64,000 bases of DNA from Rhodosorus marinus CCMP1338 (lineage: Eukaryota; Plantae; Rhodophyta), in contig JAMWBK010000012.1 in NCBI GenBank assembly GCA_029953675.1, forward strand, positions 806,001-870,000, read 5' to 3'. Below, one piece after another: positions 2,101 through 26,578 of the stretch (positions are counted from its first letter, which is position 1; every line of letters begins with the position of its first letter). The position numbers and the translations under genes are program-made. Below the pieces are notes generated by a model that worked only from the letters and a program-made list of their open reading frames with translations, did no database searches and was not told the origin of the DNA.

Positions 2101-3297
2101 TCATGCCGAGGTTTCTGGTACTGTCCTCATGAAAGCCCCTGTGGCCCCATGAATTACTGCCTCAGCGTCCTCGATCTCGATGATGTATCCAACTGACGCT
2201 TCCGAACGGATGTATGATTGAAAGCAGCTTATCCCATGAATCCGCGATGGGTGGTCTTCTAGGTCGAGGTGGTCGCGTGAATCTCGCGCTTGGCTGGTGT
2301 TCTTTAAGTCTTTGAGCACCCTGCTCACGGTACGGATCTTCCTCGAGTAAGAATCGTCAACGACGACCAAATGTGAGAGTCCAACTTGCGTAAGCAGCAT
2401 CAAGACCGATGAGGATGTCAACAGGTTCCCATGAAACACAGGCTCTTCAAGGACTTCCGGCCGATTTTCGAGGCTCCCAACGGCGATGTAACTCCGCAGA
2501 AATTCCATGACGTCAGCATCGGCAAGGGTGAACGTGAACGACGGGAGCAGCTTGGCAGTTGGTGATGTCCCGCACAGGTCTTGCATCACATGGAGAAGAG
2601 AAGGGTTGTTGATAGTCATCTTGAACATAGAACGTTTCCCTTTGATCTTTGTCCGCGTTCCGGGAGCGAAGATCTGAAGGTCCTTCGCTAAGCTATTCAG
2701 CTGGTGCTGATCGTTTTCAAGAATCGACAAGCCGTTCTCGAGGTCAGTGGCCGCTTTATAGTGCATCTTGGCAACGTACGTTGCGCAAAACCGGAGGAAT
2801 GCCTTCAATTCCTTGGACTCGGAAGAGTAAATCCTTTGGATCCTCATCTCTGGGCAAGTGTTGTCGAAGATGACGTCAGGTTCGATCATACGCTCCTGAA
2901 CAGTGGCGCCGTCAAACGGATCTCTGCCGTGGATGTTTAAATCAACTAGCTCAGAAACCTCACGGGGGTAAATTTCGTCATAAATGACTTTCATGTTCCC
3001 AGGCACGGGCTTTCGGAAATCCAGGCTGCCTCTTCCCGCCGTGACTCTCCCCCTGCTCGTATTTAGCGCTTGGAACTCGACCGGTCCTTCAATCCTTCTC
3101 AAATTGTGGATCTTCCTCCACGAGACGTATTCATCACCAACCAACGCCAACGTGCTCAGCATGGTGGCCTTCTTCTTCCATAAGACTTCCGGAGTGGCTG
3201 CCTGAACCTGGCCCGAGCTGTTCCTTACGAGTATCACGCTCCGAGCAGGAAGCAACAGCGACCCGGACGTGCCTAGCAAAGTCTTTGCTTTCATCAT
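2101..3297 (-). CDS. Free-standing intein-like protein: degenerate Hint domain with an embedded degenerate LAGLIDADG (DOD) endonuclease, no exteins
   Basis: Intronless 398-aa ORF. Block A-like SLLLPARSVILVRNSSGQVQAATPEVLW; block B region WRKIHNLRR...ALNTSRGRVTAGRGSL; DOD-like FLRFCATYVAKM, DLCGTSPTAKLLPSFTF, EFLRSYIAVGS and TSSSVLMLLTQVGL; block F/G-like GYIIEIEDAEAVIHGATGAFMRT. Motifs matched by eye only. Confidence 0.75.
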   Translation of the reverse strand: MMKAKTLLGTSGSLLLPARSVILVRNSSGQVQAATPEVLWKKKATMLSTLALVGDEYVSWRKIHNLRRIEGPVEFQALNTSRGRVTAGRGSLDFRKPVPGNMKVIYDEIYPREVSELVDLNIHGRDPFDGATVQERMIEPDVIFDNTCPEMRIQRIYSSESKELKAFLRFCATYVAKMHYKAATDLENGLSILENDQHQLNSLAKDLQIFAPGTRTKIKGKRSMFKMTINNPSLLHVMQDLCGTSPTAKLLPSFTFTLADADVMEFLRSYIAVGSLENRPEVLEEPVFHGNLLTSSSVLMLLTQVGLSHLVVVDDSYSRKIRTVSRVLKDLKNTSQARDSRDHLDLEDHPSRIHGISCFQSYIRSEASVGYIIEIEDAEAVIHGATGAFMRTVPETSA

Positions 3298-3416
3298 GAT
3301 TTCCCCGAAACCTCAGAATGTCGACGTCTTCTGTTCTGAGCGCTCAATAGTACGCAGAGTCCTTTCCTCCTTCAGAGCATACTCAACTTCTTCACGTCAT
3401 AGCTCTGTGATGAGCT

Positions 3417-20968: not shown

Positions 20969-22844
20969 ATGTTGGAAGGACTGCAAGAGAACGGTAGAAT
21001 GATGTCGGGGGCGGGGGGTGATGATGTTGAGGTGGTAAGGGCGGGTGAGGAAGCGATTGTCGGAGGTTCGGACAGGTTTGAGGAGGAGAGGGATGTGTCG
21101 CCGAACGATGATGGGGAGGGAGTTAGTAAGGAGGTGGAGGTGTCGCCGAGCAATATTGGAGAGGGAGTTAGCAAGGAGGAGGAAGTGTCGCCGGGCGATA
21201 TTGGGGAGGGAACTAGTATGGAGGAGGGTGCTGAGGTTGAAGATACTGGCGATGGAAAGGGTGAGGAGCGGTCTCGGCTGAGTATGTTTACAAACTTGTC
21301 CTTGGATCGTGATGATATGGACAATGTCCTGGAGGCGGTGAACCAGGAGCTGCTTCATATACGTCAGGGCGCCGCGAATAGACTGAAACGAACTGAGGCG
21401 CATCTTCAGAGGAGACTCAAACAGACCGAAGAGGCCTTTCGGGAGTCCCAGGCGGTGCTCAGTGCGCGGCTTCGGGAGAGCGAAAAGGCTATGAGGGAAG
21501 CCCAGCAAAGGATCGCTGAAGCAACAGAAGATCGTATTAAGGGAACACAGGCGACGCTAGTTGACGGTGTTCGGGACGCACAAGAGAAGCTGAGGGAAGC
21601 ACAGCTTAACCTAAAGGAATGGCAGGACCACTTCTTCGACCCAGTTCCCCTGAAGATCCCATTTGAGCGCCGTCGTCAGACCTTTTCATTGATGGTCTGG
21701 AGCTTCCTGTTCATCTTCCCCGGAATCTGGCTATTCTATGCAGTGTCAGGTCTCATGATTGTCCACGCCGTGCTCGCTATTGTCATGCTTCCGTACATCC
21801 TCTGGACCTTGACGGTCGACGTCGACTCGGCTTACGATGCTCGAGAAAGACCGTATCTCCGGGGCCTGCGGATATGGAAAGACATGGCGGACTTCTTTCC
21901 CAGCTCGCTTGTAAAAACGGTGAGCTAGTTCATCCTCAAATCGCCAGCCAGGAGGACGATTCGCTGAAATGTTCGAACTGCTTTTCGACCTTGCTAGGCC
22001 GATCTTGATCCCGAGAAGCGGTACATCTTCGGGATCCATCCTCATGGAGTAATCAGCTTGGGAGCATTCATTAACATCGCCACGGAAGCCACGAGCTTTT
22101 CCGATCAGTTCCCCGGAATCAGAGCCTATCTATGCACGCTGGAGCAGAACTTTAGGGTTCCGCTGGGAAGGGAGATCCTGCTTGGACTTGGTATGGTCGC
22201 AGCCAGCCGCAGAACGTTCAGAAGGCTCTGTAGGGACTCCTCTGAAACCACTAAAGGGAACGCTGTTGCGATCGTTGTTGGCGGTGCTGCTGAGGCCCTT
22301 GAGGCTTCGCCGGGCGACTACAAACTCGTGTTGGAGAGGTGCGAGCGGGAGACCGTCCCTACAAAAATTTATTGGAAGTTATCAGAACAATTTTTAAATA
22401 TCGATTCGTTTCGTTACTTGGTATTTTTCGGCCAGGAGAAAAGGGTTTGTGAGGATGGCACTGGAGACTGGCGCGAGCCTGGTTCCGGTCATCTCGTTTG
22501 GAGAGAACAACCTGTTCAAAACAATGGAGAACCCGCCGGGATCAAAACTTCGGAACTTTCAGGAGGCCCTGAAGAAGGTCGTCAATATCGCCCCAGTAGT
22601 CTTCTACGGCAGGGGCGTATTCAACTACAGGTTTGGGTTCCTCCCCTACCGAAACTCCCTCGTCACGGTCGTCGGAAAACCAATCGAAGTGCCCAAGTAC
22701 ACTGGCGAAAACGTCTACACAGATCCAGAGGCTGTCAGACTTACAAATATCTACCACGAGAAGTACGTCCACGCCCTTCGAGACCTCTTCGAACAGAACG
22801 TCCACAACTACGACGAGAGCTTCAAGAGCTTCTCGGTCGGCTGA
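20969..22844 (+). CDS. DGAT2: Diacylglycerol acyltransferase type 2 with a long repetitive N-terminal extension, multi-exon
   Basis: FGIHPHGVIS (HPHG motif), IVVGGAAEALEA, GASLVPVISFGENNLF, GRGVFNYRFGFLPYR and VVGKPIEVP. Hydrophobic segment near aa 240-280. Confidence 0.93.
21095..21229 (+). repeat. Three tandem in-frame 45-nt repeats (15-aa unit VSPxDxGEGVSKEEE) in the DGAT2 N-terminus
   Basis: gtgtcgccg starts at 21095, 21140 and 21185. Confidence 0.9.
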
Positions 22845-25295: not shown

Positions 25296-26505
25296 CAGCG
25301 GTCCGTTCTGGCTCCGGCCTGAAACCCTGCAGCAGTCGGCAAGGCAACGGTACTTCAACAAGTCAAGTCAACGTGTGTTGAAGGTTGCTTCAGCAGAACT
25401 GTTCCCCGGACTCTAGAACAACTCCGCGAGCGCTTCCATCAGGGCCCCCGTGCCAAACTCGATGGTAGACATCCTTCCTGATAGTCCATACCCCACCTGA
25501 GCGTTTGAAGATTCCCGAAGGTTCTTTGTGTCACATTTGTGGCCTAGGAGCTCGACTGAGCTCCGTTCGATAAGTTGTCACAAACAGACTAAACAACCCG
25601 TGCTAGTAGGCTTGGCCGTTTGTGGTCGTGGCAAATTCATCATCATCGTCTATGCAGAGAAAACAACCCTGAGAGGAATTAGTCCAGGCGAAACCGAGAG
25701 AACGGGCCTCTAAAACTAGAAGAGCAGCACTAGAACGCAATGGCGTGAAACTCAAGAAGAGAGGTACCCGCGAGCGGGTCTCATTGCGATCGCACAAACG
25801 GTCCTGACGCCATGCCACGCCTCTAGAACTAAGGTAGCGTTGCAGCACCAGAGAGTCACACACTTGTGACTCCCGTTTTCCTCTTGGGTCACCCACCCGG
25901 GGTGGTTAGTTTTCCACGTAAACCAGGCAGTCGGGCTCAAAGAAGTATACAGTCGAGGAAGAGCATCGGGACGGTCACGGTAACACTTGCGCCAACAAGC
26001 ACGCCCAGCGCTATCTAAGAATCCGAAGACCTCTGTAACTAAGGGACAAACCGATGAGCGAGGGCAGAGTGCAAGGCCCCATCGTTGGCAAGCACGACCA
26101 CCAATAGTGATTCCTTATGGCTCGATATGAACTGAAACCAAACGGTGCGAGACATAGATGATTGCGGGGTGGTCACATTCTTAAAGCGCTTCCTAGTACA
26201 CAACGTCCTTCGCGGCAAAGCACAGTTCGAGTAGCCGCATTGCGCTCTCGAATCGAAGACACCAACTTGCGCGTTTCAAGTGAGACGACGACCGAATTTC
26301 CGAGTGGAAAAGGTGAGTTCATACCAGATTCGTTCATTTTTCTAAAAACGGAAAAGAAGGCCAAACAGATCGGTTTAATCGGAGGGGTGCTAAGGTCTCC
26401 GAATGAGGTACGCTAGGAAGGGCACACAGAGAGCGCCTCCAAAACTAAGGCAGCGTTACAGCCTCATAAGGTTAGGACTTAAAAACAAAATCCTAAAAAG
26501 GAGCG

Positions 26506-26578
26506 TGATCCCGGTGGGATTTGAACCCACGATCCCCAGATTCAAAGTCTGGTGTGATAGCCGCTACACCACGGGATC
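26506..26578 (-). tRNA. tRNA-Gln (anticodon UUG), intronless
   Basis: Acceptor stem GATCCCG/CGGGATC, anticodon arm CCAGA-CTTTGAA-TCTGG, T arm GTGGG-TTCAAAT-CCCAC, and a T5 Pol III terminator just downstream. Confidence 0.97.

Follow-up and report, generated by a model that had tools for sequence, protein, structure and literature searches.

A candidate domesticated intein of the family-B DNA polymerase type in the nuclear genome of the red alga Rhodosorus marinus

The 64,000-nucleotide stretch of contig JAMWBK010000012.1 of the red alga Rhodosorus marinus CCMP1338 (hereafter, the window) contains on its minus strand an uninterrupted open reading frame (ORF) of 398 codons, which very probably is an intein derivative left without a host protein and without catalysis. 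The gene is best explained, with fair probability, as a domesticated, extein-less derivative of a LAGLIDADG intein of the type found at motif C of family-B DNA polymerases (PolB), now an ordinary intron-less nuclear gene of Rhodosorus. By analogy with other reused LAGLIDADG scaffolds, it may also have a selected, binding-type function, a proposal which we consider evenly balanced.

Inteins are usually seen as pure parasites that home or decay. To our knowledge, HO and WHO are the only well-studied stand-alone inteins kept by a cell, and they still cut DNA. If the proposed reading is true, the Rhodosorus gene would be the first extein-less intein kept by a cellular genome after losing both splicing and cleavage chemistry, and would represent a second independent route, by which a complete intein of the PolB lineage, in another eukaryotic supergroup, has lost both chemistries and yet has been conserved.

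Homology to inteins and replaced catalytic residues

The exhaustive HMMER search (phmmer) covered 1.84 billion representatives, and its matches, apart from one (P0004), were only intein-bearing proteins and a free-standing protein of 381 aa (P0006). The intein-bearing matches were three GDP-mannose 4,6-dehydratases (P0005, P0007 and P0010), with E values of 3e-6 to 8e-4, and two family-B DNA polymerases, P0008 (E=3e-4) and P0009 (E=8e-4). P0004, the top distant match, was rejected as a repeat-driven false positive; this protein of 1498 aa consists of about 13 near-identical repeats (DUF5486 / CshA-like) and matches only ORF residues 223-259. The inteins excised from the nearest true relatives are 386-396 aa long, compared to 398 aa for the ORF. 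Searches with standard resources gave little: the Pfam scan of the ORF, including the Hint, Intein_splicing and LAGLIDADG models, returned nothing at E<=10, the NCBIfam scan yielded nothing but a match below threshold, in the part of an archaeal PolD model that carries an intein, and single-sequence phmmer against PDB gave a sub-threshold match to PI-PkoII (E=1.1). These searches are too insensitive for this protein and are not negative evidence.

Profile methods are more informative. When the Rhodosorus pair was compared with five inteins, profile against profile (hhalign), residues 127-277 matched with a probability of 98.9% and E=1e-17; with the ends alone, the N-terminal part reached E=0.033 and the C-terminal part was not significant. 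A custom profile was then built from 54 complete inteins related to the first five and excised from viral, metagenomic and genome contigs, all of which start with Ser and 53 of which end with His-Asn (one with Arg-Asn). With this profile, hmmsearch matched ORF residues 146-273 (E=1.3e-21), and hhalign aligned residues 19-314 to intein positions 5-307 of 366 (99.4%, E=6.7e-22), the alignment at a permissive threshold running from L15 to T392 against intein positions 1-366. The ends were also tested alone against a column-shuffled null of 150 shuffles. Residues 1-125 alone gave E=1.6e-6 and a score of 39.2, compared to 11.7±2.7 for the null (z about 10), which none of the 150 shuffles reached; in the C-terminal segment, Y371-G387 fell on block F in the correct register. 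At the level of profile comparison, the homology of the LAGLIDADG core and the N-terminal Hint half to inteins is established, and the presence of a C-terminal Hint half is suggested. A homing-endonuclease domain lies between the putative Hint halves, as found by both hhalign and hmmsearch. The protein search with the intein profile returned 3 proteins, and the search with the family profile detected no further members and nothing in viral contigs. The parts of the gene, all on the minus strand, are as follows (window positions).

2101-3297 (-): whole host-less, putatively intein-derived ORF, 398 codons, intron-less, with stop codon TGA at 2101-2103 (ORF listing)
3262-3297 (-): 12-residue leader MMKAKTLLGTSG before the intein-like body (alignments)
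3067-3261 (-): putative N-terminal Hint remnant, residues 13-77, the block A region and next strands (hhalign, model confidence 70-86, dN/dS)
2974-3066 (-): degenerate block B region, residues 78-108, with T86-A-G-R89 for T-x-x-H (alignment)
2368-2970 (-): LAGLIDADG (dodecapeptide, DOD) domain, apparently derived from a homing endonuclease, residues about 110-310 (phmmer, hhalign, hmmsearch, model confidence 85-96)
2764-2808 (-): first LAGLIDADG helix LKAFLRFCATYVAKM, residues 164-178 (catalytic-position table)
2473-2514 (-): second LAGLIDADG helix DVMEFLRSYIAVGS, residues 262-275 (profile alignment and catalytic-position table)
2206-2367 (-): weakly conserved linker, residues 311-364 (modelled with low confidence, dN/dS 0.60)
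2122-2205 (-): putative C-terminal Hint remnant, residues 365-392, with block F GYIIEIEDAEAVIHGATG (hhalign, model confidence 54-79 with strands, dN/dS 0.17)
2104-2121 (-): 6-residue tail VPETSA after the intein-like body, with the same tail in P0012 and P0003

The LAGLIDADG-derived domain keeps both pseudo-symmetric halves, and the M-x-x-A-K start of the leader is common to the ORF and its distant relative P0006. The residues needed for intein chemistry were compared in an alignment of 20 sequences, 17 of which are true inteins.

Block B Thr: T in 17/17 true inteins; T86 in the ORF (kept); K in P0006
Block B His: H in 17/17; R89 in the ORF; E in P0006
First LAGLIDADG acidic residue: E/D in 17/17; K177 in the ORF; S in P0006
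Gly after the first acidic residue: G in 17/17; M178 in the ORF; G in P0006
Second LAGLIDADG acidic residue: D/N in 17/17; gap or G274 in the ORF; T in P0006
Block F Asp: D in 17/17; I372 in the ORF; S in P0006
Penultimate His: H in 16/17; R391 in the ORF; P in P0006
Terminal Asn: N in 17/17; T392 in the ORF; T in P0006

In this alignment, T86-A-G-R89-G lies against T-x-x-H, YVAK177M178 against the first LAGLIDADG motif (...YvsEG), YIAVG274S against the second (...eGDG), and FMR391T392 against the ...vHN C-terminus. The Ser that opens all 54 inteins (position 1) is aligned to L15, and S13 (Cys in P0006) lies two residues upstream, the register here being uncertain by 2. The block B His, the block F Asp and the terminal His-Asn are needed for splicing. 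Both LAGLIDADG acidic residues are needed for catalysis by the endonuclease (PMC3384342). Because the residues required for both reactions are replaced, it is inferred from the sequence that the protein should neither splice nor cut DNA.

The predicted structure was obtained with an alignment of the family together with eight full-length intein-bearing proteins. The resulting model has a predicted template modelling score (pTM) of 0.73, and its local confidence (predicted local distance difference test, pLDDT) is 70-96 at residues 11-77, 110-275, 290-310 and about 365-392 and low at 78-108 and 312-364. Strands are modelled at residues 11-77 and 357-391, and helices 162-177 and 260-273 (pLDDT 85-96), which align to both LAGLIDADG motifs, correspond to the pair expected at a pseudo-dimer interface. 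A Foldseek search of PDB with this model found PI-PkoII (2cw7) first, with E=3e-9 and a template modelling (TM) score of 0.53, followed by the Tli and Pho VMA inteins (7qsu/7qss/7qst) and PI-SceI (1ef0/1vde); single-domain I-DmoI and WhiA (8dy7_I, E=2e-3; 3hyi), which match the LAGLIDADG domain, ranked after complete inteins. In the viral library, the matches were intein-bearing polymerases, reductases and RNA polymerases.

An earlier note on this DNA, made from its letters, had proposed the order Hint-N, LAGLIDADG, Hint-C. This order is supported by the profile-profile alignment and by the structure model, for which whole inteins are the best PDB matches, and each of the motif strings quoted in the note is present and aligns to the intein block assigned to it. 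The catalytic degeneration described there is also borne out, as all the splicing and cleavage residues invariant in 17-54 true inteins are replaced. In the comparison with Hint and LAGLIDADG profiles, which the note had suggested as a check, the Pfam models did not match and the custom profile of 54 inteins did. The suggested structure prediction followed by Foldseek placed complete LAGLIDADG inteins first, in a model that is not independent of them.

A transcribed gene without host protein

The gene has its own start and stop codons and no exteins. The ORF starts with ATG ATG, and the minus-strand letters leading into it read TGA GGT TTC GGG GAA ATC ATG ATG.

3313-3315 (-): in-frame TGA, 6 codons 5' of the start codon (sequence read)

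This stop codon excludes an N-extein in the same exon. In the transcript contig L004 from strain CCMP769, 400 nt of leader are collinear with the genome and an in-frame stop lies seven codons before the ATG. Over 290-400 nt ahead of the ORF, the transcripts follow the genome without a break, so that no spliced extein exon is present. After the Hint body, only VPETSA follows, with no C-extein, zinc finger or Cys-rich region. The ORF is thus no in-frame insertion in a host protein, the intein-like body being preceded by 12 and followed by 6 residues, and it has the form of a free-standing intein-like gene without exteins, as known for HO/WHO.

Close relatives of the ORF were found solely in Rhodosorus marinus transcriptomes (taxid 101924, Stylonematophyceae), where the orthologs are P0012, P0002 and P0003. 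P0012 (UniProt A0A7S3EQU3, MMETSP0011) is 397 aa long, 84% identical and collinear end to end. L004 aligns to window positions 3696-1103 and is gap-free across the ORF, which shows the gene to be intron-less. The same gene, with about 88% nucleotide identity, is present in a second transcriptome (JGI 3300016967; contigs L001/L002). In both transcriptomes, the ORF contig continues into ALG10 on the opposite strand, which means that synteny is conserved and that the two genes are convergent, with overlapping 3' ends (3' untranslated regions). The gene is transcribed, as shown for two Rhodosorus lineages other than the sequenced strain itself.

The ORF lies in intron-bearing eukaryotic nuclear DNA. 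It is flanked by two intron-bearing cellular genes, ALG10 and a short-chain dehydrogenase (SDR), and its content of G and C (0.49-0.54) is no different from that of the flanks. ALG10 is on the plus strand, with Pfam DIE2_ALG10 matched in the ORF pieces 116-442 and 1093-1605 and introns placed by transcript-to-genome alignment at 404-471, 784-856, 1010-1102 and 1663-1727; the SDR gene starts at about 4590 of the window. It is also worth noticing that L004 still contains the 65-nt ALG10 intron (1663-1727), which has been spliced out in L005 and L001. The stop codons of ALG10 (+) and of the ORF (-) are about 150 bp apart (window about 1950-2103).

The claims which the earlier note had made about the locus are confirmed. 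The 398-codon ORF with ATG ATG is present at 2101-3297 of the minus strand exactly as described, the flanking residues, given as 12 before and about 6 after the body, amount to about 12-14 and 6, and the position next to ALG10 is borne out by the Pfam matches and transcript contigs. That the DNA is of red-algal origin is likewise confirmed. The absence of a host is upheld by upstream in-frame stops in the genome and in the CCMP769 transcript and by the collinear transcripts. The syntenic orthologues beside ALG10 and the expression, which the note proposed to look for, were found in two other Rhodosorus transcriptomes.

Selection, rival explanations and possible function

The ratio of nonsynonymous (dN) to synonymous (dS) substitution rates (omega) between the ORF and L004 is 0.32 (dN=0.086, dS=0.27). 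In the bootstrap, its 95% interval is 0.22-0.47, with all replicates below 1, and the Fisher test gives p=6e-10. Among the regions, omega is lowest in Hint-C (0.17), block B (0.19, few sites) and the leader with Hint-N (0.22), intermediate in the LAGLIDADG domain (0.37) and highest in the linker (0.60). Constraint is no weaker at the Hint ends than in the core, an argument for the continuing structural importance of these ends. Judged by these substitution patterns, the gene is under purifying selection across three Rhodosorus lineages. The selection on an intact frame which the earlier note had suggested is supported by dN/dS with an interval below 1, and also by expression and synteny. The frame is still open at the level of divergence of P0006, which points to long-term selection.

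Several observations weigh against a domesticated, functional full-length protein. The omega of the ORF (0.32-0.45) is somewhat higher than that of ALG10 between the two transcriptomes (0.21-0.28). The contigs L001/L002 lack 100 nt of the block B region (window 2995-3094, ±8 nt; codons 68-101; L001:290-310), and this deletion shifts the frame, leaving an N-terminal ORF of 66 codons and an ORF of 297 codons which starts from the conserved M102. A spliceosomal intron was considered for this gap and rejected, as no GT...AG is found in any register within ±8 nt, and the gap was treated as a genomic deletion. In CCMP769, the isoform P0002 has a 1-nt and an about 74-nt deletion between GAATT(T)AC repeats (L004:645-800, about window 2940-3090), which a single in-frame deletion cannot explain. 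In P0002 and P0015, a C-terminal 1-nt frameshift swaps the last 9 residues for a tail of 56 residues, and among the MMETSP0011 isoforms, P0012 is intact and P0013 and P0014 are split; these MMETSP0011 isoform differences could be alleles, paralogs or assembly errors. The indel-prone stretch, which includes the block B region, coincides with the part modelled at low confidence. Omega for the C-terminal 297 codons is 0.38 in all three pairs, and the first 66 codons have dN of 0.13-0.15 in pairs with L001, compared to 0.06 (few sites), which is consistent with relaxed constraint on the severed L001 N-terminus. Some lineages may be able to do without at least the N-terminal part, or their copy of the gene may be in decay, and the deletions speak most strongly against a full-length protein that is required everywhere. 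Further points concern the homology and the distribution. The C-terminal segment alone is marginal, with a score of 13.8 compared to 8.7±1.9 for the null, reached by 3 of 150 shuffles. The model from the four family sequences alone was uninformative (pLDDT 34), and the usable model is corroboration and not independent proof because its alignment held true inteins. The distribution of the family, finally, is very narrow, comprising Rhodosorus and one other sample.

It may be asked whether the gene is a slowly decaying relic, that is, a horizontally acquired intein or homing-endonuclease gene, now inactive and drifting to a pseudogene without function. The frameshifting deletion in L001/L002, the second indel variant of CCMP769 in the same stretch, the linker omega, the narrow taxonomic distribution and the loss of all catalytic residues fit this explanation. 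It is, however, unlikely: the interval of omega excludes 1 and the Hint ends have values of about 0.2, two lineages separated by dS of about 0.25, and a relative of 23-29% identity, have an intact ORF, omega does not rise in the 297 C-terminal codons of the deletion-bearing lineage, and the composition is the same as in the flanks. A function other than binding of DNA is also conceivable, with the dead LAGLIDADG scaffold helping to fold or splice organellar introns as an RNA-binding, maturase-like factor. Maturases, too, have kept the scaffold while losing endonuclease residues (PMC3384342). The first 36 residues of the ORF have no acidic residue and are rich in S/T/R/K/L, a trend which P0006 shares; this composition is compatible with an organelle presequence and is not evidence for one. 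The same stretch, however, is homologous to the strands of intein block A, so that no targeting function need be invoked for its composition, there are only 12 residues ahead of the Hint body, and the known maturases are intron-encoded and not intein-derived, all of which makes a maturase-like role rather improbable.

That the scaffold comes from an intein at all could be doubted, as the Pfam Hint, Intein_splicing and LAGLIDADG models are silent even at E<=10, the C-terminal segment alone is marginal and the family-only model is uninformative; the gene would then be a free-standing or intron-encoded LAGLIDADG gene with unrelated Hint-like extensions. This is very unlikely in view of the N-terminal 125 residues, which match the Hint-N of 54 inteins in register, of the relatives, since all significant sequence matches are inteins and not intron homing-endonuclease genes, and of the length, which equals that of related inteins. 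In addition, whole inteins precede I-DmoI-type enzymes among the structural matches, and the block F pattern is common to Rhodosorus and P0006. An element that is still active and selfish, either a WHO-like homing gene beside its target ALG10 or an enzyme with a non-canonical active site, appears highly improbable. A free-standing intein-like gene lying directly downstream of and convergent with a housekeeping gene does superficially resemble WHO at FBA1 (PMC7282813), and the proximity of the ALG10 and ORF stop codons adds to this likeness. Against it, both metal-binding acidic residues (K177; G274/gap) are replaced in all family members, no ALG10 fragments, extra copies or pseudogene cluster are present in the 64 kb, the position is stable in three lineages, and there is no zinc finger. 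The origin of the nearest true inteins in uncultured archaea, bacteria and viral contigs might lead one to suspect contamination or mis-assembly, with a prokaryotic or viral fragment joined to the red-algal contig. This can hardly be the case, as transcriptome contigs obtained independently from two other Rhodosorus lineages also have the gene beside ALG10, GC content is as in the flanks, the flanking genes have spliceosomal introns, and the source contig is 1.16 Mb long.

For the preferred reading, a domesticated PolB-type intein derivative, it is proposed that the scaffold would be kept for its remaining ability, the LAGLIDADG beta-saddle binding a specific nucleic-acid target. HO and PI-SceI use the Hint lobe in DNA recognition, and the Hint-derived lobe of the Rhodosorus protein possibly aids target recognition in the same manner. 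Because no domain such as a zinc finger or a helix-turn-helix (HTH) motif is added, binding would have to come from the intein body itself. The protein might act as a non-catalytic DNA-binding factor, regulatory or chromatin-associated, or, less likely, as an RNA-binding factor. The complete proposal, in which an old domestication of a PolB-type intein, predating the split of Rhodosorus and P0006, gave a non-catalytic, sequence-specific nucleic-acid binder with the Hint lobe used for recognition, is tentative and stands slightly below an even balance.

Origin and comparison with known systems

The free-standing protein P0006 comes from the Logan assembly SRR22824282 (contig L003:807-1952). It is collinear with the Rhodosorus protein over the full length at 23-29% identity and shares with it, in addition to the M-x-x-A-K start, the LPSF motif and the block F pattern. 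It is likewise without all catalytic residues, and about 800 nt upstream of it in L003 contain no recognisable domain. The relationships were analysed with a simple neighbour-joining (NJ) distance tree with 200 bootstraps and long branches, from which the yeast VDE, HO and WHO sequences were left out. P0006 and Rhodosorus are monophyletic in 200/200 bootstraps, and the sister group of this host-less family is the main PolB clade in 151/200 and a PolB subset of some kind in 187/200. The NJ placement beside PolB motif-C inteins is indicative only. The 54 inteins form four groups according to host gene and insertion site.

PolB motif C: site Y-x-D / T-D
GDP-mannose dehydratase: site A-A-Q / S-H-V
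dTDP-glucose dehydratase: site F-A-A-E / T-H-V-D
Archaeal A-ATPase subunit A: site G-Y-P-G-Y-M-Y / T-D-L-A

Among the four groups compared, the A-ATPase inteins (VMA-b site) are the most distant from the family, which speaks against a descent from the VMA1/VDE lineage. The polymerase hosting the P0009 intein is about 30% identical to Halorubrum tailed-virus PolBs and bacterial Pol II, and the other intein relatives come from IMG/VR contigs, one giant-virus metagenome-assembled genome (MAG), and MAGs of DPANN and other archaea. An origin from the plastid DnaB intein was considered and rejected, as no DnaB intein is among the relatives in the exhaustive search. The affinity to PolB inteins suggested in the earlier note thus agrees with the sister position in the NJ tree. 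As to the viral or prokaryotic origin suggested there, the nearest inteins reside in PolBs like those of prokaryotes or prokaryotic viruses, and a giant-virus source was not demonstrated.

The best sequence relatives by profile and tree are the PolB motif-C inteins (P0008, P0009, L006, L010, L012; PI-PkoII/PI-TkoII 2cw7), which resemble the Rhodosorus protein in domain order and length and share the N-terminal pattern R-x-V-x-V-R-x-x-x-G-...-E-x-L-W. Unlike it, they lie in frame within a polymerase, have Ser as their first residue and His-Asn as their last two, with Thr next in the host, and keep T-x-x-H and both acidic residues. The second system to be considered is that of HO/WHO, free-standing intein-like genes with an active LAGLIDADG endonuclease and a C-terminal CxxC zinc finger, which are present in budding yeasts only (Coughlan et al. 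2020, PMC7282813). They derive from the VMA1 (VDE) intein lineage, and WHO genes occur in polymorphic clusters with target-gene fragments (PMC7282813). Like the Rhodosorus gene, HO/WHO are extein-less, independently expressed and non-splicing, keep Hint-like and LAGLIDADG parts and have no functional motif G; some WHO genes also lie directly downstream of a housekeeping gene (FBA1), as the ORF lies by ALG10. However, the Rhodosorus gene is without both catalytic acidic residues and without a zinc finger, groups with PolB motif-C inteins, and belongs to a red alga; unlike WHO, it is single-copy (in the 64-kb window) and positionally stable.

The loss of catalysis has its nearest parallel in WhiA (DUF199), in which a dead LAGLIDADG scaffold serves as a bacterial transcription regulator (Kaiser et al. 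2009; PMC3384342). WhiA and the Rhodosorus protein are alike in the two-lobed LAGLIDADG scaffold, in the replaced metal-binding acidic residues and in being non-nucleases kept by the host, whereas the ORF apparently keeps both Hint halves, has no HTH or extra DNA-binding domain and is lineage-restricted. LAGLIDADG maturases, e.g., yeast bI3, kept the fold after DNA cleavage was lost and reused it for nucleic-acid binding (PMC3384342); they differ in being encoded in organellar group I introns, in binding their own intron RNA and in being neither intein-derived nor nuclear. Red-algal inteins in a 2018 eukaryotic survey were those of plastid DnaB only (Green et al. 2018, PMC5784728). These are true inteins in a host, whereas the ORF is nuclear, host-less and apparently of PolB type. 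No paper combining Rhodosorus with inteins was found in the literature search. The gene is closest to HO/WHO in ancestry and to WhiA in state, and is a member of neither. Nor does it count as an intein, for want of exteins and splicing residues, or as an active homing endonuclease, for want of the acidic residues. It combines HO-like extein-less ancestry with WhiA-like reuse of a dead scaffold, and could serve as a test case for the contribution of the Hint lobe once splicing is gone. As a naturally evolved, non-cleaving LAGLIDADG candidate binder it would be of engineering interest, and it would be evidence for the uptake of intein genes by red-algal nuclear genomes.

Some further observations were made during the analysis. 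Loci L019-L086 (e.g., L041, L074 and L079) contain many related LAGLIDADG inteins at GYPGYMY/TDLA of the archaeal A-type ATPase subunit A, from soil and groundwater MAGs (Bathyarchaeota, Thermoplasmata, Woesearchaeota). Related inteins are also present in dTDP-glucose and GDP-mannose dehydratases, including those on IMG/VR viral contigs. In the window itself, the sole tRNA gene is a tRNA-Gln (TTG) at 26505-26578 (-), and a tandem repeat at 21084-21227 (45 bp unit, 3.2 copies, 81% matches) may be coding.

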